From positions 60,680,985 through 60,744,984 of the forward strand of contig NC_068983.1 in assembly GCF_001194135.2 (NCBI RefSeq): DNA of 64,000 nt, in the 5' to 3' direction. Below are positions 1-63,071 of the stretch, piece after piece; position 1 is the first letter of the stretch, and every line of letters begins with the position of its first letter. Below the pieces are notes generated by a model. That model had not been told where the DNA came from and made no database searches. It saw nothing but the letters and a program-made list of their open reading frames with translations. The DNA comes from Octopus bimaculoides (taxonomy: Eukaryota). Made by a program: the position numbers and the translations under genes.

Positions 1-2
1 AA

Positions 3-1234
3 TTGTGCAAATTTGACATTCATAAAAACAACTTACAGAATTTGCCAAATTCAATGGCAAATCTCAAAAAATTGAAAGAATTAGATTTATCCCAAAATCT
101 TTTTGAGCAGCTTCCTCCGGTTATATGCTCATTATGCAATACTAAATCCTTAAATTTTAGTAGAAACTTATTGACTTATATAATACCTTGCATGGATAAC
201 TTGAAGAACTTGCAAGAACTAAATGTCTCATACAATAACTTAATGTCAGTGTGTTTATCGATGAGCAAGTTAAAGAAGATGAAGTATCTAAATCTGAGTT
301 ACAATCAACTGACGGAAGTGCCAACATCTCTACAGCAGTTGCCATATCTGAGAATACTTCACATTCAAGGAAATAAAATTAAGCATGTACCAAATGGCTT
401 CACAAGTTTAATGTACCTGAATCTTTCTAACAATCAAATCTATAATTTCACAATAGGGAAAATGAAAAATTTGTTATCATTGAACATCAGTCACAACAGA
501 TTGAGTCAATTACCTCACGGCTTCTATCAACTGAAACGACTAGAACATCTGATTGTTAATGACAATCAGATAAAGTCCATACCTTATGAAATAGTAAGAC
601 TAAAACATCTACGCACACTGGATATTAGCAACAATAGGTTAACAAGTGTACCGCCATATATTCCTCAAATTACAAGTTTGGAATATTTCAATACAGAAAA
701 CTGTAACGGTGAACAAGAGACAAACTCACAAAGAAACGAATTAATCACAGCAAAGAAACACTTTATGAAAAAACACGAAAGCAATTTAATTCAGAAGAAG
801 AGCCTTGAAGCTAAATCTCCGAAGCAATATTCCTCAATGAAAAGTTTTACTGGTGATAATCAATATACAAAAAGAAAACAGTGCAAACGTCTCCAATGCC
901 AGACGGGGACATTGTTGAAGAACACTGCTTTATTACAATATGACACAACACATTACACAATGCCATCATATAAGGCTCAGGCATGGAATAACACGGATGC
1001 CAACTCAATATCAAATGTATCCAATCAAAGGCAAATCTTAAACAGAGGAAACCAATGGCTCCATGCTTACTCTAAAAGCACAGACAGCAAACGAAACCTT
1101 CATACAAGTGACAGCACAAGTGGTTTTGCAGATGAGATTGAAGTCAGTATTGCTAGTGATGTCTCTTCAAACGATCCAACAATAATGACCATTCATGACT
1201 GGTTGGAACCAGAACAACACAGGGATACTAACTG
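3..1234 (+). CDS. LRR + ZU5 protein (PIDD1/LRRD1-like architecture), first visible exon, open at the window edge; tandem LRRs then a Ser/Thr/Asn-rich linker
   Basis: Repeated LxxLxLSxNxLxxLP motifs over roughly the first 225 codons. The ORF ends at AACTG|GTGAGT, a phase-2 donor. Confidence 0.9.
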
Positions 1235-1510
1235 GTGAGTACAACAGATATTATAAACACAAATTTTTCTGATAATTAGAACATAATTACATTTCTAGAT
1301 TAGTTTCAGAAAAATATAACTTGAAGGTGAAAAAAAATAATTATAAGCATTGTAGGTGCAGTTGTGTAGTAAGAAGCTTGTTTATCAACCTGGTTCTGGG
1401 TTCAGTCTCACTGCGTGGCACCTTGAGCAAGTATCTTCTACTAGTTTTGGGCTGGCTAAAGCCTTGTGAATGGACTTAATAGATGGAAACTGAAAGAAGC
1501 CCATCGCACG

Positions 1511-1544
<34 letters not shown>

Positions 1545-2719
1545 CACATACATATATATAAATAAAGAACACCTCTCAAGCATTGGGCTTCACGGAGGCA
1601 ATGACCAAGACCTTTGGCATTATGTCGTGCTTGAGAAGACCCATCAAGCCAAGCAAAATCCCAGCTGCGGCAGATACCAGTGTCACGCAAATTGGCACCC
1701 ATGCTGGTGGCACCTAAAAGCACCCCAGTGTCAAGCAAATGGCACATAAAAGCACCCATTACACTCTTGGAGTGATTGGCGTTAGGAAGGGCATCCAGCT
1801 GCAGAAAACCATGTGAAATTGGACTGGAGGTTGGTGCAGCCTTCCAGTATGCCAGCCCAGTCAAACTGTCCAACCCATGCCAGCAGGGACAACAGCATGG
1901 ATGATAGGTGTGATTGCCTTTGTGTCTGTGTTTGTCCCCCACAACTGTTTGGTAATCAGTGTTAGTTTGTTTACACCCCTGTAACTCACAGACTGATAGA
2001 ATAACTACCAAGTTTAAAAAAAAAAAATAAAGTACTAATGTTGATTTGTTGGACAAAAAATTTTCAAGGCGGTGACCCAGCATGGGTGCAGTCTGACTGA
2101 AGCAAGTAAAAGATAAAGATTTCCACTGAAATTTATTTGAGAAAAGTTGGATAAAGTATGTTTCATTTAAAATGGAAATCTTGGAGCAGAGAGACATATT
2201 GGAAGGAGAAAAAAAAAACTGGTACTACGTTGATTATGATGACAAGTGTTCCTGTTGATTTGATCAACAGAACAGCCTGCTTGTCAAATAATTAACAGGC
2301 AAGTGGCTGGGTACTCCACGGACATATGTACCCTTGATATAGTTCTCAAGGAGATTCAGTGTGACACAGAATGTGATGAGGCCGGTCATTTGAAATACAA
2401 TTCATTTCTTCTAGCTGAGTGGACAGGAGCAATGTAAAATAAAGTGACTTGCTCAGGGACACAACATACTGCTGGGGATTGAACTCATGATCTTACAATC
2501 GTGAGCCGAATACCCTAACCCAGCATTTCTCAACTGGGATTCCCCCGGAAAGCTAGGATTCCGCAAGAAAGAGTGAGATAGCTAATGCTAATTTCATGAT
2601 TGTAATATTACTATATATGCACAACATATCATTGGTTATTGTAATATAGACATCATCCTATCTAACCTATTATGTTGTCAAAAATATATAACAACCATAT
2701 ATATATATAGGTATATATA

Positions 2720-2794
<75 letters not shown>

Positions 2795-3059
2795 ATATTT
2801 ACCACTTGAACTACGATGAAAAATATATGAAAAAGTTATGGTATAGAATTTTTTTTTGTGTAGGGGTTCCTTGAGAGATGTAATTTATTTTAAGGGTTAC
2901 ACAAGAGTAAAAAGGTTGAGAAACACTGCCCTGGCCACCAAGTCATGAGCCTTCATCTATATTAGAAGTGAGAAACTGAAAGACATAAGAAAATAACTCT
3001 TTAACCAAACTATTTTAAATGGGCTAAAAGCAAAACATGAAACATAAATTACATTGCAG

Positions 3060-3282
3060 GCCGACAGTCCAATTCAACTTTGATGAAACTATTTCATGTG
3101 GCTGTAGTGATTCTAATGCAACAACGGCTAATCCAAGAGCACACGGTCTGGTGAAGGTATTTAAAGAGATATTCAGCATAACACAGGACGGAGGAGAGTT
3201 TGTCTCCTCAGACAACTCTAACATATCTTTAAATATACCAAGTGATAATAATGTGGAACAACATCTACAGGTTATCATGCAG
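3060..3282 (+). CDS. LRR-ZU5 gene exon: start of ZU5-like domain (ITQDGGEFVS...ISLNIP)
   Basis: TTGCAG acceptor. TG+G gives Trp in frame with the previous exon. CAG|GTGAGT donor. Confidence 0.85.
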
Positions 3283-3779
3283 GTGAGTGAAAACATTTTA
3301 ATAGATTATGAAATTTCATTCAAAATCTTCCAAGTAATTTTTGAAATACATGAAATTTTGTGACTGTTTAAATAGATGCCAATAATCCATTATCTGGACA
3401 TTTCTACATGGATGGACTTGAGGAAAATTTCATTCTTCAGTTGTCTTTGTACTCAGATAATTCTCAAACAGCTTACACGACAGTGAATGATTAGTTAGAT
3501 TGCTAGACTAAGGCCATGCTACAGTATCACTTTCAAAGCTTTATTTTTTAGTCAATCAAATTGTTCCCAGAGATTATTTCAAGACTGGTACTTGTTCTAT
3601 CAGTTTCTGTCTTTGCTGAACCATTAAGTTATAAGGATGTAAAGAAACCTACACAACTTCCATCTACCAAATTTATTCACAAAATAATAATTGGTGGTTC
3701 AACCTAGACTTAAAAGATGAAATTATTTGCCCATTGAACCTATATTTTCTTTTCGATCATGGATAGAGTCAGCCCATAA

Positions 3780-3962
3780 CGTGCGCAATACAAGCATGTA
3801 CTGGACTCCGTAGTTTGTAAAAATGCATCTAAAATCCAATTTGTGCAAAGATGTTGCTATTTTCTTTTAGAATTAGCAGAGAACCTCAATGATTTCAGAT
3901 TAGGTTACATACAACAAGAAAAGCTTGAAAATGTTTCCCATGTCAGACAAGTAGATCATTAA
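3780..3962 (+). mobile_element. Possible P-element/THAP9-type transposase relic
   Basis: A stop-free 60-codon stretch, ...FLLELAENLNDFRLGYIQQEKLENVSHVRQ, resembles the LLGxFQxDxLExxFGxxRQ motif. Confidence 0.4.
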
Positions 3963-4229
3963 AGAATTATACTATCACTCAACTTAGCAGTTTGGCAAAA
4001 GTGACCCTGATAGAATAAGTGCTAGGCTGAAAAACAAAAAAAAAAAAAAAAAATGTACTGGGGTTGATTTGTTTAAAATCCTTCAGGGTGGTACACCAGC
4101 ATGGCTGCAGTCTAATGACTGAAACAAGCAAAAGATAAATTTGCCCTACTTTTTTTTTTTTTAAATTCATTCACAGTATGATGGAAAGATAAATGCAACA
4201 TCTGGGGATCATAAAAAAAAAAAAAAAGG

Positions 4230-4620
4230 AAGCTACTCAAATTCGAGGTTTTGTTTCCATACCTGGAATTTCTTCTCTAATTCTTCTATAGATTCAGCTA
4301 TAAGAACTAGATGATCAGCATATAGGAGTTCCCATCGACAGTAGGTCTTGAACTCCTCTCTGATGGCCTGTAAGACTATGAATGAGGATTGAACCTAAAT
4401 GGATTCCTGTCTTCATGCCAAATTAATTGCTCAATGTATTGCTGACTCACTTTACTAACTGCACACATATACATAGATTGTACAACCCTAACAAGCCATT
4501 TGTCTACACTTAGTTTCTTTAATGACCACCAGATTACAGAGCAATGGCATCCTATCAAAGGCCTTCACCAAGTCAAAAAAATGCTAGATATGGTGTCTCA
4601 CTTACCACATTTACAACAAA
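4230..4620 (-). mobile_element. RTE-like LINE RT fragment
   Basis: The minus strand encodes ELLYADHLVLIAESIEELEKKFQVWKQNLE, a degenerate YADD motif region. Confidence 0.75.
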
Positions 4621-5183
4621 TTAAGTGGTTCACAAACTAATCCTTCAAGCATATAACCACAGTGTTGATGGGTCAAGTTGGCTAGTGTACAAACATTACT
4701 AAATGTGAGTTGGTTTATAAACAAGAACCTCTCCAACAAGAATCCAGAATACCCAAGTTGTAATGTTCAGTTCCTCACAATAAGATGAAGATTGAATTGG
4801 CAATCCAGAGTATTTAAACAATAACAAATGATGATATATTTAGATTTCAAGATTTAATTCAGTTTAAATATTTTCTTCTCAAAAGGGTAGACTGCCAGAA
4901 GAGAATTCAAGACAATGTTTCATCAGAAATTTGAATTTAAAATATTTAAGGGGGGAAAAAAAAAACCCCCAGTATATAAATAGAAATCTAACTGAAGCAA
5001 TAATTTATATATATATAAAAGTAAAAAGTTTTCACAAGCAAATATCTCAATTGTGGACCTCAGAATGATAGAGTATAACTCCTGAAAGTACTTTATATTA
5101 CATTTGCTATCAACATTAGAGCAGCTGATAAACTGATTACGTGCGTGTCTTTTGCTTTCTTTTATTGTTGGTGATTAATACAG

Positions 5184-5470
5184 GTAATCAGTATCAGTGA
5201 AGATGCCATTCTATCAGCTCAAATCCAAGACCCTCTACTGAACAACATACTTTCCGTAAGTGTTATTGTGATGCTAACCCCCAACACTGACGTTCCATTT
5301 ACCATTCCTATAACCATCAACCTGCCAGCACCACCAACACTGGAAGATAACGAAGTCAGTGGCTGTTTGCATGTGCTGACAGCAAAGAATGACAATACAT
5401 GTACTCCTTTCTTTAGAAATTATACTCTTGAAAACGGATACATAACCTTGCAAACCTACCATTTAGCAGG
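5184..5470 (+). CDS. LRR-ZU5 gene exon: ZU5-like core (LSVSVIVMLTPNTDVPFTIPITINLP...YITLQTYHLA)
   Basis: ATACAG acceptor in phase 0, GG|GTGAGT donor. The S-x-V-x-L-x-P...F-x-x-P-I-T-I-x-L-P pattern is typical of ZU5. Confidence 0.85.
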
Positions 5471-6709
5471 GTGAGTGAACATTTCATTATTTATCATAAA
5501 TAAAAAACAATTTATAGACATTTAAACCATCCCCACCTCACAATTCAAAACAGTTTATATTAGTTTTCAAATTTTGGCAGAAGGCCAGCAAGTTCAGGGG
5601 AGTGGGGGTAAGATGATTACATTGACCCCAGTGCTCAACTGGTACTTATTTTATTGACCCAAAAAGGATGAAAGGCAACTTTGGTCGAATTTGAACTCAG
5701 AACATAAAGGCAGATGAAATGCCACTAAGCATTTTGCCTGGTGTGCTAACGATTCTGCCAGCTCGTTGCCTTACTCTCAATTTACATTGAGAATCATTCA
5801 TTTAAATCCTAAATTTAGAAGAAATGACTGACTGAAAAGAAAGGGACATTTAATCAGTTGGTAATTTCCATCTATAGGCTTACTTGAGTTAGAATATTTA
5901 ATACTAACTCACAACAACAATAATTAACCCATTTGTACTGAAATTTTTCTAGAGAATGAAATTGCCTGAAAATTCAAATACTATTATTTTGACCTAAATA
6001 ACTGAAAAAAATTTCCTTGAAACCCGTTTGATACCAACTGCATACACATTAAGAACACGTTTCATTCTTTGATACAGATCATATACAAATCACAATTAGT
6101 GTCAAGTATTTGTTTTATACCCTTATAAATTAAAGGTCAGTTTAAATGGACAATCGGCATGAATGGGTTAAGGTATTTTCTTTTGTTAAACTTACATTGC
6201 TGCAGTGATTAGCTTCTATTGCTAGATGTGATGTGTGCTTGCCTCTGAATGCATACCTCAGGTTATATAGCTTTGACACACTTCTGTTTTACTGTTCTAA
6301 CAAAGCTGAGAGGTATTAAGTCCCAACTCACAACACTTGCTTTATAATTGTACTCTGCTAACAAAACTAAGCCGACATTGGAAACCAAATCAGCAATTGG
6401 GAATTGTTACATTTCCTTTCTTTCTTTTAAGTTTTGATCGTTATAATTGGTGCACTGTAACAAAGCTATATGGGGAAAATTTATTGATTAACATTCTGAG
6501 CAGCTTTGCAACTAATTCTGAATAAATATTAGTTGAAATCCAGCTTAAGAGAGCAAGCTTACACATGTTCAACTAGGCATAAACATATAATGTTTCAGTG
6601 TCATTTAATTTTTTTCTAACAGAGCACATGTCTGGAAGAGTTTTTTTCTTTTTTTTTCTTCTTAAAGCAGGTCAAGCTGTAACCTGAAGATGATCTGAAA
6701 TTATTGCTA

Positions 6710-7150
6710 GATGTAGGACAGATTATTTTTTGAAGATGTAAGACAGATTATATTTTTTAAGATGTAGGACAGAGAATTTTTTTTAAGATGTAGGACAGAT
6801 TATTTTTGCAAGATGTAGGACAGATTATTTTTTTGAAGATGAAGGACGGATTATTTTTTTAAGATGTAAGACAGAGAATTTTTTTTAAGATGTAGGACAG
6901 ATTATTTTTGTAAGATGTAGGACAGATTATTTTTTTGAAGATGAAGGACGGATTATTTCTTTAAGATGTAGGACAGAGAATTTTTTTAAGATGTAGGACA
7001 GAGAATTTTTTTTAAGATGCAGGACAGATTATTTTTTTAAGATGTAGGACAGATTATTTTTTGAAGATGTAGGACAGATTATATTTTTAAGATGTAGGAC
7101 AGATTATTTTTTTTAAGATGTAGGACAAATTTATTTTTAAGATGTAGATT
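6710..7150. repeat. About 26-bp minisatellite, roughly 17 units (agatgtaggacagattatttttt)
   Basis: Seen directly as a tandem array. Confidence 0.95.
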
Positions 7151-8124
7151 TAAGAAGGTTATGACAGACAAAAAAAAGTATTCATATGAGATGAAAAGGA
7201 TTCTGGATACTATCTGATGTATGGATTTAGTGAAGAAGTAAATCAGTGGTTCTTCACCTTTTTTTGTGTAGCACCCCACTAAGTGGTGAGTGAGGTATCA
7301 TGACTAAACTAACTTCACATGGATGATAATTTATAAATTTTACTCTAAAAATGGATTGTATAAGCTTTTAACTGGGAAATGATAAAAAAATGATATAGAC
7401 AAAAGTTGAAAGTTTACTTTATACATTACAAATTAATGACTGCTCTGTGCTTGATGAGATCACATTTTGTGTTAATAACCATTGCTAGTTTTATCATGTA
7501 TAATATAATTATTTTAGGTAAAATTTAGTGTACAAATTATGTTACCTCACTGCCCACTAAAGCCTAATGCCTTCTTGAGGGCAATACTGCTCACATTGAG
7601 AATCTGTTAGACTCAACTGATGGCCACAGTGGAGTAACATGCCCACATCTAGGATAAAGGTACTACACACACACACACACACACACATATATCCTGGACT
7701 GCATTCAGAGAAGAGCTATCCACCTAATTGTTATTCAATTATTTACAGACATACTCCATCTTCTGGCCCACATGTGTGCTGCCTCCACTCTCTGTCTTTT
7801 CTAATGTCACTCTAATGCCTCTGTTCTTCTTCAGAGCTGGCTTGCCTCCTATCCTTGCCACTCAGGCACCCCTAACCTCTCATCACTCTTGCTGTATTCA
7901 TTCCACTTGGTCCTAACCATTATTTCTAGCCCTTTCTTCCCATAACATCAACCTTCTAAAATCTTGTTCTTGCTCATGTCATTATTTGATGATATGCTTC
8001 AAAAATTAACAACAATACAAAGATATGTGTAAAACTGAACAATCTACATAAAGCACAACAAAATGATATTAACTGATTCACACACCACAAGTTTATCAAT
8101 GTTGTTTTTGTGTGTTTTACACAG

Positions 8125-8209
8125 GAAAGTTGCAGTAATGACCAGATCAAAATGCCAATATAAGGCCTGTAAATGCACTGAAAGTCTGCTGATGATGATT
8201 TTGTCCTGA
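8125..8209 (+). CDS. LRR-ZU5 gene probable last coding exon (G-KVAVMTRSKCQYKACKCTESLLMMILS*)
   Basis: Polypyrimidine tract plus TTACACAG acceptor, phase-compatible (GG+G). TGA at 8207-8209 and AATAAA at 8309-8314. Confidence 0.7.
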
Positions 8210-8737
8210 AGATGGAAACACGAAGAACGGAAACTAAACTTAAGACAGAAGTCAGCTGAAGTTTTATTCTATTCAATTAAACTCTAAAGACACAAAATTT
8301 AGCAACAAAATAAATGCTTGTCTTTTTTTCTTTTAATTTAATTTTGTTGAATTTGTTTCAACAAAACCGTTCCCTCTACCAAATACAATTGATTGAAACT
8401 CACACAAGTTATAATGAGTAAGAAACCTGTTGATAATTAAAGATAATCACAATTTTGATTCGTTACATTGGTATTAGGCTCCAGGATTGAACAGGATGGT
8501 TATATATGATTGACACTAGGATATGTCAGGTACTTGTTGACCAGAAATAAATGAAAAGCAATGTCAGAAATTGATGAGATGGATTTTGAAATGGCTAAGA
8601 CTTATTTCTACCATAAAGAATATTCCCAAACACTATACATTTTGTAGAATACCAAAAAGGAATTTTCATACAGCAAACACAATATATAATCTTTATATAT
8701 ACATATATATATAATATAATAATCTTTATTGACTTAC

Positions 8738-8864
8738 CATTATAGAACAAGAAAGGAATCTCTAATGGTTCGATCTTTTCTTTAATGTTCTGTGCAGAGA
8801 CTGTGCAGGATAAAACATACTCAAAACCATCTTTTCCTGGTGTATTTTCTTGTAAGGTAATTTT
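8738..8864 (-). CDS. SMCHD1: SMCHD1 exon 40, last visible (KITLQENTPGKDGFEY...IEPLEIPFLFYN)
   Basis: 127 nt, TTCTAG acceptor and a strong phase-1 GTAAGT donor. Matches ESSPGRDSTEY...LPFMFYN, the segment just before the coiled coil. Confidence 0.94.
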
Positions 8865-10171
8865 CTAGAAAATTAAATGATACCATTTAGTACCAGAAGT
8901 TCAGGACAATGAAATAAGTCAAATATAATTTCTTAGATGAAAAAGATATCGAATAACCAAGACTAAAATCATGAGTATTTGTTATGACAAGAGAGAAAGT
9001 TAACCCTTTAGCATTCAGATTTCTCTGTCAAATGTAACGTTTGTTTATTCATATTGATTTGAACTTGTCATGCTTTACCTTGTGGCTTATGATGCGTTTA
9101 TTTCATCATCATTGTTTAATGTTCGCTTTCCATGCTGGCATGGGTTGGATGGTTTGATTGAGGACTGGCAAGCCAGGAAGCTGCACCAAGCTCCAATCTG
9201 ATCTGGCAAGGTTTCTACAGCTCCACTGTCTGTTCTGGGTGGATGGCCTTCCTAAAACCAACCATTTAACACACTGTACTGGGTGTTTTTTTTAGATGGC
9301 ACCAGCACCAGTGGGGTCACCAAGTACCCACAAGATCCCTAATCTGAGTTGGGTATAGACTGGAGAAAGAAACTATTATAGAGGGAGACGAGCAGGTGTC
9401 ATGCTGAAGAGGTGGGTGAATACATGGTTTGCCTACTAGGAAAGTGAGAAAGAAAGCAAAAAAGTGGTACATTTGTGTGAATCCATTGAAGAATTTTCTC
9501 TCTCTTTCTGGCAATGTCATGTTTTGTTTTTGCTGTTTCAACTCTTGCCAATAGACACTGGCAGATGGTTCTTTATTTTTGTTATGACAAATGAGACAAT
9601 TTGAGAGGTGAGGCCCCTACTGAAGATACTAATTTTATTGTCTAGTACCTGTTGCTAGGTCTGAAATTAGTAGAACAGATCTGTTGTATAACCTACGAGG
9701 ACGAAATACTGAAGGACAACCTCAGGATGCTGAACCTTTCAGATAAAATGACATAGGACCAAGATATCTGGTACCTTGCTGTACCCAAGAAGACCTGTCC
9801 AGCATGAGCCCTGTGTTGGTGCCACGTAAAAGTGCTTGTGCTGTGGCACATTAAAAGCACCTATCGCACACTGTAAAGTGGTTGGTGTTAGGAAGGGCAT
9901 CCAGCTGTAGAAACCTTGCTGGATCAGACTGGAATCTGGTGTAGCTCACCAGCTCCAGTGAAACCATCCAACCCATGCCAGCATGGAAAACGGACATCAA
10001 AGGATGATGATGATGATGATGAATGTTATTCTGAAATTTAGAATCAAAACAGGTCCTTATTTTAAAGATTATAATTTATTGTACTGAGCAGGTGAAACAA
10101 AGACTTAGAAGTTCTCCTGGTTTGTCAAGCTGAATTAGATTTTGAAAAACATTTCTGATTGAAGACTGTAC

Positions 10172-13010: not shown

Positions 13011-13051
13011 NNNNNNNNNNNNNNNNNNNNNNNNNNNNNNNNNNNNNNNNT

Positions 13052-40610: not shown

Positions 40611-41283
40611 NNNNNNNNNNNNNNNNNNNNNNNNNNNNNNNNNNNNNNNNNNNNNNNNNNNNNNNNNNNNNNNNNNNNNNNNNNNNNNNNNNNNNNNNNN
40701 NNNNNNNNNNNNNNNNNNNNNNNNNNNNNNNNNNNNNNNNNNNNNNNNNNNNNNNNNNNNNNNNNNNNNNNNNNNNNNNNNNNNNNNNNNNNNNNNNNNN
40801 NNNNNNNNNNNNNNNNNNNNNNNNNNNNNNNNNNNNNNNNNNNNNNNNNNNNNNNNNNNNNNNNNNNNNNNNNNNNNNNNNNNNNNNNNNNNNNNNNNNN
40901 NNNNNNNNNNNNNNNNNNNNNNNNNNNNNNNNNNNNNNNNNNNNNNNNNNNNNNNNNNNNNNNNNNNNNNNNNNNNNNNNNNNNNNNNNNNNNNNNNNNN
41001 NNNNNNNNNNNNNNNNNNNNNNNNNNNNNNNNNNNNNNNNNNNNNNNNNNNNNNNNNNNNNNNNNNNNNNNNNNNNNNNNNNNNNNNNNNNNNNNNNNNN
41101 NNNNNNNNNNNNNNNNNNNNNNNNNNNNNNNNNNNNNNNNNNNNNNNNNNNNNNNNNNNNNNNNNNNNNNNNNNNNNNNNNNNNNNNNNNNNNNNNNNNN
41201 NNNNNNNNNNNNNNNNNNNNNNNNNNNNNNNNNNNNNNNNNNNNNNNNNNNNNNNNNNNNNNNNNNNNNNNNNNNNNNNNNNN
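40611..41283. other. Assembly gap (others at 13011-13050, 42117-42579, 48729-48950, 62814-63070)
   Basis: Runs of N, mostly next to (TA)n tracts. Confidence 0.99.
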
Positions 41284-42116: not shown

Positions 42117-42879
42117 NNNNNNNNNNNNNNNNNNNNNNNNNNNNNNNNNNNNNNNNNNNNNNNNNNNNNNNNNNNNNNNNNNNNNNNNNNNNNNNNNNNN
42201 NNNNNNNNNNNNNNNNNNNNNNNNNNNNNNNNNNNNNNNNNNNNNNNNNNNNNNNNNNNNNNNNNNNNNNNNNNNNNNNNNNNNNNNNNNNNNNNNNNNN
42301 NNNNNNNNNNNNNNNNNNNNNNNNNNNNNNNNNNNNNNNNNNNNNNNNNNNNNNNNNNNNNNNNNNNNNNNNNNNNNNNNNNNNNNNNNNNNNNNNNNNN
42401 NNNNNNNNNNNNNNNNNNNNNNNNNNNNNNNNNNNNNNNNNNNNNNNNNNNNNNNNNNNNNNNNNNNNNNNNNNNNNNNNNNNNNNNNNNNNNNNNNNNN
42501 NNNNNNNNNNNNNNNNNNNNNNNNNNNNNNNNNNNNNNNNNNNNNNNNNNNNNNNNNNNNNNNNNNNNNNNNNNNNNNNAAATTCAAGTTAATAAATCCT
42601 TTGTTTTCCAGATTTAAGAATTCTGTTTAAAATAAAGTAATCTCAAATAACAGTGATGAGTTTGCTGTATACAGTACACAGATGCATGGCAATTTGAAAA
42701 AGGAGAAGAGGGGACTGAAGCAACAATAAGTAAAGAAAGAGAGTAATGAGAACCAAAAGTACATGCATAGTAAAGAGCAGATAAAGACAAAGAAGTGACC
42801 AGTAAAAGGGCCACAAGGGGGGGGGGTGCAGAGGCACAAGAGTTGGTGAAGTTTGGGAAGCTTGAAATTTAGGAAGGAT

Positions 42880-48728: not shown

Positions 48729-48951
48729 NNNNNNNNNNNNNNNNNNNNNNNNNNNNNNNNNNNNNNNNNNNNNNNNNNNNNNNNNNNNNNNNNNNNNNNN
48801 NNNNNNNNNNNNNNNNNNNNNNNNNNNNNNNNNNNNNNNNNNNNNNNNNNNNNNNNNNNNNNNNNNNNNNNNNNNNNNNNNNNNNNNNNNNNNNNNNNNN
48901 NNNNNNNNNNNNNNNNNNNNNNNNNNNNNNNNNNNNNNNNNNNNNNNNNNN

Positions 48952-62813: not shown

Positions 62814-63071
62814 NNNNNNNNNNNNNNNNNNNNNNNNNNNNNNNNNNNNNNNNNNNNNNNNNNNNNNNNNNNNNNNNNNNNNNNNNNNNNNNNNNNNNNN
62901 NNNNNNNNNNNNNNNNNNNNNNNNNNNNNNNNNNNNNNNNNNNNNNNNNNNNNNNNNNNNNNNNNNNNNNNNNNNNNNNNNNNNNNNNNNNNNNNNNNNN
63001 NNNNNNNNNNNNNNNNNNNNNNNNNNNNNNNNNNNNNNNNNNNNNNNNNNNNNNNNNNNNNNNNNNNNNNN

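Follow-up and report, generated by a model that had tools for sequence, protein, structure and literature searches.

Does the octopus SMCHD1 gene continue beyond the point at which another gene takes over on the opposite strand? The question is raised by a stretch of 64,000 nucleotides of Octopus bimaculoides DNA (contig NC_068983.1, positions 60,680,985 to 60,744,984; hereafter the window). An earlier note on the window had identified a minus-strand SMCHD1 gene and, in positions 1-8737, a spliced plus-strand gene coding for a protein with leucine-rich repeats (LRRs) and a ZU5 domain. It left two readings side by side, one in which the LRR-ZU5 gene is nested in an SMCHD1 intron of more than 8.7 kb, and one in which SMCHD1 is split or lacks its hinge. 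Our analysis indicates that positions 1-8737 are very probably most of a phase-1 intron of an intact SMCHD1 gene, that this intron holds a complete and independent antisense gene, and that the guest has most likely been retained there passively.

As reference locus we used L001, from O. bimaculoides chromosome CM046603.1 (GCA_001194135.2), the one contig on record for P0001, the annotated product of the plus-strand gene. Window position p corresponds to L001 position p + 10,385, with 0 mismatches across 18,209 overlapping bases, and L001 extends the sequence leftward of window position 1 by 10,385 bases. SMCHD1 was followed by individual exons, PDB sequences and cross-species tblastx, while its length is that of the annotated model (2065 amino acids, aa; minus strand), which covers the entire locus and has the 737-aa gene within it. 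The assignment of the minus-strand gene to SMCHD1 was borne out: its exons for the N-terminal GHKL ATPase, which lie further right in the window, match 6MW7, the structure of the N-terminal part of mouse SMCHD1 (E=9e-52), and the annotated 2065-aa product contains the Pfam families HATPase_c_3, SMCHD1_S5 and Ig_SMCHD1. The exon that borders the plus-strand gene could be read directly as the note had described it, its minus-strand end (8750..8738, TTG TTC TAT AAT G) running without a stop into a phase-1 GTAAGT donor (8737..8732). The next SMCHD1 exon lies at L001 8159..8041 (DCKKQSRMASLSKERD...), after a ttctag acceptor and before a GTAAGT donor. It begins with AT, completing in phase the split codon G/AT for Asp, and continues CKKQSRMASLSKERDTIQIAIRAYKSMFETTEQLINELK; the coiled-coil motif that the note had looked for as D.KKQQQM was recovered at its start as D-CKKQSRM. 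With exons read on both flanks, the host intron measures 10,963 bp in total (L001 8160..19122, window -2225..8737), and would run from the exon that precedes the coiled coil (...IPFLFYN) to the first coiled-coil exon (DCKKQSRM...).

The hinge was found where the earlier note had proposed to look for it. Three exons 3.5-7 kb to the left of the window align one after another with the crystal structure of the mouse SMCHD1 hinge, 6N64 (overall E=3e-15; Table 1), and carry MSADMDCVVT and QQVLPLDSI. One further SMCHD1 exon gave a tblastx match at L001 1511..1386 and is conserved in five other species, and on either flank of the host intron the SMCHD1 exons are conserved between phyla. These matches bear on the reading in which octopus SMCHD1 would be split or hinge-less, with the LRR-ZU5 gene lying between genes or after a truncated SMCHD1. 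In the window alone no exon follows the phase-1 donor at 8738, as that reading has it. However, the following exon completes the Asp codon in phase, coiled-coil and hinge exons continue on that strand over less than 10 kb, annotation gives a single product of 2065 aa, and the same exon-intron-exon junction is present in six other species, so that a split or hinge-less SMCHD1 is very hard to credit. Judged from these exons, octopus SMCHD1 is neither split nor hingeless. It resembles vertebrate SMCHD1 (mouse 6MW7 and 6N64) in its ATPase match, in the consecutive order of its hinge exons and in its set of Pfam families, and it differs in that its pre-coiled-coil intron carries a nested gene.

A Pfam scan of the hand-joined coiled-coil and hinge exons, together with the last Ig-region exons, returned no family, SMC_hinge included, these fragments being short or incomplete. 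Nothing scored when the protein collection was searched with the joined SMCHD1 C-terminal exons, octopus SMCHD1 included, the collection being one that may omit very long proteins. Five N gaps lie inside the SMCHD1 body (13011-13050, 40611-41283, 42117-42579, 48729-48951 and 62814-63071) and, because they could hide exons, SMCHD1 exon counts such as the ‘exon 40’ of the earlier note are conditional. Within the coiled coil, the stretch NHEASHLEQQ...EILGKV (L001 6849-6637) is a single open frame in both Octopus species and two separate blocks in Haliotis, Owenia, Patella, Lineus and Pecten (e.g. L009 7748-7662 and 7377-7264). Since one frame in Octopus stands against two blocks in five other species, this suggests that an intron was lost from the stretch in the octopus lineage. 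Beside the SMCHD1 coiled-coil exon of Pecten maximus (L008 5381-4965) there is a 56-bp unit coding for ERKLRGDLRRLKVPLVHLQNV in about 7 tandem copies, most of which cannot be coding because the period is not a multiple of three.

Turning to the plus strand, we recovered the spliced gene of the earlier note together with its stop and poly(A) signal. All four exons (Table 1) have GT/AG borders, and their joined translation equals the annotated 737-aa P0001 exactly. The first, which codes for the complete LRR domain and the disordered linker (Pfam LRR_8 E=2.9e-41), has its ATG at L001 10001, 384 bp beyond the left edge of the window; the second is conserved by tblastx in Pecten, in Haliotis and on two further contigs, L003 and L013. 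The coding sequence (L001 10001-18594) lies wholly within the host intron, its ATG 1.8 kb from the downstream host exon, its stop 529 bp (0.53 kb) from the upstream one and its poly(A) signal 424 bp from the same exon. Host and guest exons are not interleaved: in tblastn the coiled-coil and hinge exons of SMCHD1 each map once, to the left of the window and outside 1-8737, and a tblastx comparison of 1-8737 with seven species returned four plus-strand exons only and no conserved minus-strand exon. The note was thus right to report neither coiled coil nor hinge in this interval, and the interleaved layout that it had weighed against nesting is not the one present.

The synteny check that the note had called for gave the same nesting in seven annotated genomes from three phyla. 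An LRR-ZU5 gene lies antisense in the same SMCHD1 intron in two cephalopods (O. bimaculoides and O. sinensis), one bivalve (Pecten maximus), two gastropods (Haliotis rufescens and Patella vulgata), one annelid (Owenia fusiformis) and one nemertean (Lineus longissimus). The intron is of phase 1 in 7/7 genomes, has GT...AG borders, falls at a homologous codon and spans 7,066-15,305 bp. Its upstream exon ends ...FLFYN (...FQFHN in Owenia), with orthologous exons of this type in Pecten, Haliotis, Patella, Owenia, Lineus, L003 and L013, and its downstream exon begins D/N.(K/R)KQ(S/T).M. In every case the 3' end of the nested gene faces the SMCHD1 exon; the distance is 126 bp in Lineus, 529 bp in O. 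bimaculoides and at most 3.2 kb, in Pecten. The ENA-assembly contigs L003 (cephalopod-like) and L013 show the same convergent adjacency of tail and exon; the 4.7 kb upstream of the L003 LRR gene contained no coiled-coil exon, and full nesting in L003 is implied. In the Lineus annotation the guest appears as two models 3 bp apart (L012 5503-9997 and 10001-11005), a 783-aa LRR protein and a 160-aa ZU5-tail protein, which are probably one gene. Because the stop of this guest is so close to the SMCHD1 exon, its 3' untranslated region may overlap that exon in antisense.

Since the same intron holds an orthologous antisense gene in all of these genomes, the nesting would predate the split of the phyla and is not a product of misassembly; on this evidence it is no younger than the last ancestor that molluscs, annelids and nemerteans share. 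That ancestor lived more than about 500 million years ago.

The guest also bears the marks of selection. Comparison of the rebuilt coding sequence with that of its O. sinensis orthologue (XP_036356726.1, 739 aa) by the Nei-Gojobori method gave a ratio of nonsynonymous to synonymous substitution (dN/dS) of 0.067 (dS 0.23, dN 0.016), with regional values of 0.058 for the LRRs, 0.096 for the linker and 0.042 for ZU5 plus tail, while the alignable introns are 87-94% identical between the two species. The nested gene is under strong purifying selection. Taken at the level of sequence, host and guest are both functional, in the sense of being intact and under selection.

Could the plus-strand gene instead be an artefact of assembly or annotation, such as a contig put in the wrong place, a pseudogene or a model with no gene behind it? 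The five N gaps in the window and the marginal ZU5 score of the single protein (below) would fit such an account, though 0 of the gaps fall in 1-8737, and across that interval and the 10 kb on its left no gap is nearer than L001 4108-4250. Against it stand the open frame of 737 codons, the canonical splice sites and the dN/dS value, as well as an identical layout in independent assemblies of seven species, which excludes the local misassembly that the note had kept in view. Of all the explanations considered we find this one the least credible, with next to no probability.

Alternative forms of the guest are annotated. Exon 3 is skipped in isoforms P0122 and P0123, in which the last exon is frame-shifted and ends ...ESCSNDQIKMPI at a stop in 8161-8163, and both O. 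bimaculoides and O. sinensis have an annotated isoform of this exon-skipping kind. The O. bimaculoides isoform P0124 uses an internal alternative donor (5255/GTAAGT), giving a 650-aa form. These annotated alternative isoforms remove the ZU5 core, and their existence hints at transcript support for the gene.

How, then, has the pair stayed together? Our proposal is that the nesting had a single origin, no later than the common ancestor of the lophotrochozoan phyla concerned, and that it has most likely been kept passively, through the ‘entrapment’ of two genes that are each selected individually. Any single rearrangement breakpoint in the intron would break SMCHD1, and parting the genes would take two breakpoints in one 7-15 kb intron with neither selected gene harmed; it is because of this asymmetry that we prefer passive retention. 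The SMCHD1 pre-mRNA would presumably be spliced across the ~11-kb intron as usual and, with a start, splice sites, a stop and a poly(A) signal of the guest's own, the layout would require no regulatory coupling.

The constancy of the arrangement can also be taken as the sign of a selected regulatory unit, in which antisense transcription of the guest would set the balance of ATPase-only and dimerising SMCHD1, or in which both products would serve one chromatin or stress pathway. We consider this unlikely. Were it true, it would explain why one intron has kept the pair together from before the divergence of molluscs, annelids and nemerteans. In one version, which takes up an idea of the earlier note, convergent transcription of the guest would cause premature termination or intronic polyadenylation of SMCHD1 after the ...FLFYN exon, with the ratio of hinge-less to full-length product under selection. 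Consistent with this version, the guest 3' end always points at the SMCHD1 exon from close by (126 bp at the least, in Lineus, and 3.2 kb at the most, in Pecten), position and orientation are identical in the seven annotated genomes of three phyla, and read-through of the donor at 8737 reaches a stop after 46 codons. A minus-strand AATAAA is also present at 8730..8725, and mammalian host genes produce a greater variety of transcripts when co-expressed with their nested genes (PMC11694760). However, constant orientation and position are predicted equally by passive entrapment, the spacing between guest and host differs 25-fold among species, and the SMCHD1 models on record at the loci seen are all full-length (1930-2065 aa). 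The AATAAA, 8 nt past the donor, was considered as a premature SMCHD1 poly(A) site and discarded, since chance yields about one per kb in an intron of 65% A+T. This version is speculative and in our judgement improbable.

Several points nevertheless count against passive retention in an intact SMCHD1. Retention in one intron and one orientation across three phyla, cephalopods included, is equally expected from selection for functional coupling; cephalopod genomes are heavily rearranged. The expression of both genes and the splicing of SMCHD1 across the intron are taken from annotation, including isoforms predicted in both Octopus species. Of the hinge, the left 10.4 kb shows about the first half (residues 6-114 of the 222 in 6N64) and one further exon; for the remainder the support is the annotated model, which continues beyond the locus. 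Finally, a homologue of the guest on contig L004 (7952-10627; Logan SRR23372228), from a compact and gene-dense genome, is not near SMCHD1: no SMCHD1 exon was found within 10 kb of it, making it the only case seen with the guest outside SMCHD1. This implies that the pair can be uncoupled, which is allowed by passive retention and by regulatory coupling alike. The L004 homologue has the same KCKYKACKS tail, and its neighbours include fucosyltransferase, ESCRT-II, CRT-like and myotubularin genes.

What kind of protein does the guest encode? Its 737 residues comprise about 16 SHOC2/LAP-like LRRs, a low-complexity linker of ~200 aa, one ZU5 domain and a 27-aa tail that forms a conserved basic, Cys-rich C-terminal helix. 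Pfam detects strong LRRs over residues 1 to ~370, and scores ZU5 at 18.9 bits in the whole protein and 22.0-22.2 bits in the isolated C-terminus, against a cut-off of 21. Across the family the signal is firmer: 8/10 members match Pfam ZU5 (best 4e-6), and a profile of ten family sequences finds ankyrin ZU5 in the PDB at E=3e-9. An AlphaFold 2 (AF2) model of the C-terminal domain, built on the family alignment, reached a pLDDT (predicted local distance difference test) of 85.1 and a pTM (predicted template modelling score) of 0.79. In Foldseek the thirteen best PDB matches to this model were all ankyrin ZU5 domains (E 4e-8 to 2e-4, TMq <=0.69; top match E=4e-8, TM 0.68), followed by weaker matches to GAIN domains. 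The C-terminal domain is thus predicted to have the ZU5 β-sandwich fold, and the label ‘LRR-ZU5’ holds, the ZU5 assignment being solid at the level of family and predicted structure.

The family was found by an exhaustive representative search with the last 216 residues of the nested protein, which returned 26 proteins, P0001 included; a ZU5-alignment profile search of the word-indexed collection gave three short fragments only. Those relatives that are full-length are LRR proteins, with the matching domain at the C-terminus or close to it. The named relatives belong to bivalves (Mytilus, Pecten, Ylistrum, Mya, Sinanodonta), gastropods (Haliotis, Patella, Elysia, Plakobranchus, Candidula, Biomphalaria), the annelid Owenia and the nemertean Lineus, and have been given inconsistent names, as SHOC-2-like, lap4-like, LRRC7-like, scribble homolog, LRDD-like or uncharacterized proteins. 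A K-C-x-Y-K-A-C tail with five invariant residues is common to 10/10 aligned members, and is encoded by a separate conserved exon in 7/7 compared loci. At E<=1 Pfam gave no UPA or death domain in the nested protein, which stops 27 aa past its ZU5. We also considered whether the guest extends downstream into UPA or death-domain exons interleaved with those of SMCHD1; this was rejected because, in the full-length relatives that were aligned, the protein likewise ends with the conserved tail exon and its stop.

The closest known proteins are PIDD1/LRDD and, for the ZU5 domain, the ankyrins. PIDD1/LRDD is arranged as LRR - ZU5 - ZU5 - UPA - death domain, with autoprocessing at HFS motifs, and one scallop orthologue of the guest is named ‘leucine-rich repeat and death domain-containing protein 1-like’ by NCBI. 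The guest is like PIDD1/LRDD in having N-terminal LRRs followed by ZU5, and most of its relatives carry H-F/L-S/T before the last β-strand. In contrast to PIDD1/LRDD it has one ZU5, about 16 LRRs rather than 7 and neither of the two terminal domains, and the octopus protein has HLA, without the Ser nucleophile of the HFS motif. The nested protein is not PIDD1, from which its domain layout sets it apart. Ankyrin ZU5 domains (PDB 4D8O, 3UD1, 6M3Q) provide the best profile and structure matches to the guest C-terminal domain; unlike ankyrins, the guest has neither ankyrin repeats nor a tandem ZU5-ZU5-UPA-DD (DD, death domain) supramodule, and its ZU5 is 13-16% identical to theirs.

The loop before the last β-strand reads W-H-F/L-S/T-G-K in most relatives; among all of them HFS, HLS, HLT, HFT, QLT and QFA occur. 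Both Octopus species have HLA at this point, with Ala in place of the nucleophilic Ser/Thr, while the cephalopod-like contig L003 retains HLS. PIDD, Nup98, ZU5-like FIIND and GAIN-type domains self-cleave at this H-F/L-S/T motif (PMC3210808). Members of the LRR-ZU5 family may likewise cleave themselves, freeing a tail made of the last strand and the helix, an ability that Octopus may have lost.

Gene nesting as such is already well known; what is new here is the pairing of SMCHD1 with an LRR-ZU5 gene, and its age. Conserved intronic pairs include TIMP in synapsin and VAChT in ChAT. Hosts of nested genes make up 17% of human and 12% of mouse genes (PMC11694760), LRRTM genes are nested in the vertebrate alpha-catenin genes (PMC3933685) and 2mit is nested in Drosophila timeless2 (PMC3786989). 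The octopus pair resembles such conserved cases in that a full antisense gene lies, long retained, in one intron of a larger and unrelated host and, as with LRRTM and 2mit, the guest encodes an LRR protein. It differs from known pairs in joining SMCHD1 as host to LRR-ZU5 as guest, and in its occurrence in Mollusca, Annelida and Nemertea. No literature linking SMCHD1 with ‘nested gene’ or ‘microsynteny’ was found in the library searched. For SMCHD1, the outcome is an octopus gene that appears complete, hinge included, and that carries a guest in one intron. The pair itself is a clean and apparently very old one. It could be used as a synteny marker in Lophotrochozoa, and as a natural test case for the question whether nested genes are kept over long times passively or through an interplay of their transcription with that of the host. 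In addition, the analysis outlines an uncharacterised family of lophotrochozoan proteins, composed of LRRs, ZU5 and a ‘KCKYKACKS’ tail, and gives a first description of its genomic home.

Table 1 Features of the host intron, the nested gene and the SMCHD1 hinge (window positions, or L001 where stated; a slash marks a splice border)
Feature	Position	Strand	Details
SMCHD1 exon ending ...IPFLFYN	8864..8738	-	KITLQENTPGKDGFEYVLSCTVSAQNIKEKIEPLEIPFLFYN+G; 127 nt, phase 1, no stop; acceptor ttctag
SMCHD1 host intron, part in window	1..8737	-	acceptor ttctag/AT ahead of DCKKQSRMASLSKERDTIQIAIRAYKSMFETTEQLINELK exon
Nested gene, coding exon 1	1..1234 (cut by window edge)	+	donor TG/GTGAGT at 1234/1235; frame 3..1235
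Nested gene, exon 2	3060..3282	+	ZU5 first half; acceptor cag/G, donor CAG/GTGAGT
Nested gene, exon 3	5184..5470	+	ZU5 core; ends ...TYHLAG; HLA codons 5460-5468
Nested gene, last exon	8125..8209	+	conserved tail KVAVMTRSKCQYKACKCTESLLMMILS; stop TGA 8207-8209
AATAAA poly(A) signal, nested gene (predicted)	8309..8314	+	100 nt past stop; from sequence
25-bp minisatellite AGATGTAGGACAGATTATTTTTTTA	6709..7147		17 copies, 86% matches; nested-gene intron 3; non-coding for both genes
SMCHD1 hinge exon	L001 ~6.7 kb	-	6N64 residues 6-51, ...RPRRLCGLAQTPSDPEILGKV
SMCHD1 hinge exon	L001 ~5.7 kb	-	6N64 residues 48-82, ...SWHMSADMDCVVT
SMCHD1 hinge exon	L001 ~3.5 kb	-	6N64 residues 83-114, ...GKQQVLPLDSIYKKTLPEWDK

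A short open frame at 4236-4394 (-), ...RWELLYADHLVLIAESIEELEKKFQVWKQNLE, resembles by eye the YADD region of the reverse transcriptase of a long interspersed nuclear element, and had no Pfam match at E<=0.01. An open frame of 279 codons at 2224..1388 (-), likewise without a Pfam match, is a copy of a repeat that is dispersed through the SMCHD1 introns on both strands (1390-2220, 9100-9300, 9740-10000 and many more places). In translation this repeat gives ...FPCWHGLDGL.../...FLQLDALPNANH...; presumably it is an octopus element resembling short interspersed nuclear elements. Finally, intron 1 of the nested gene contains an (AT)47 microsatellite at 2697-2791.

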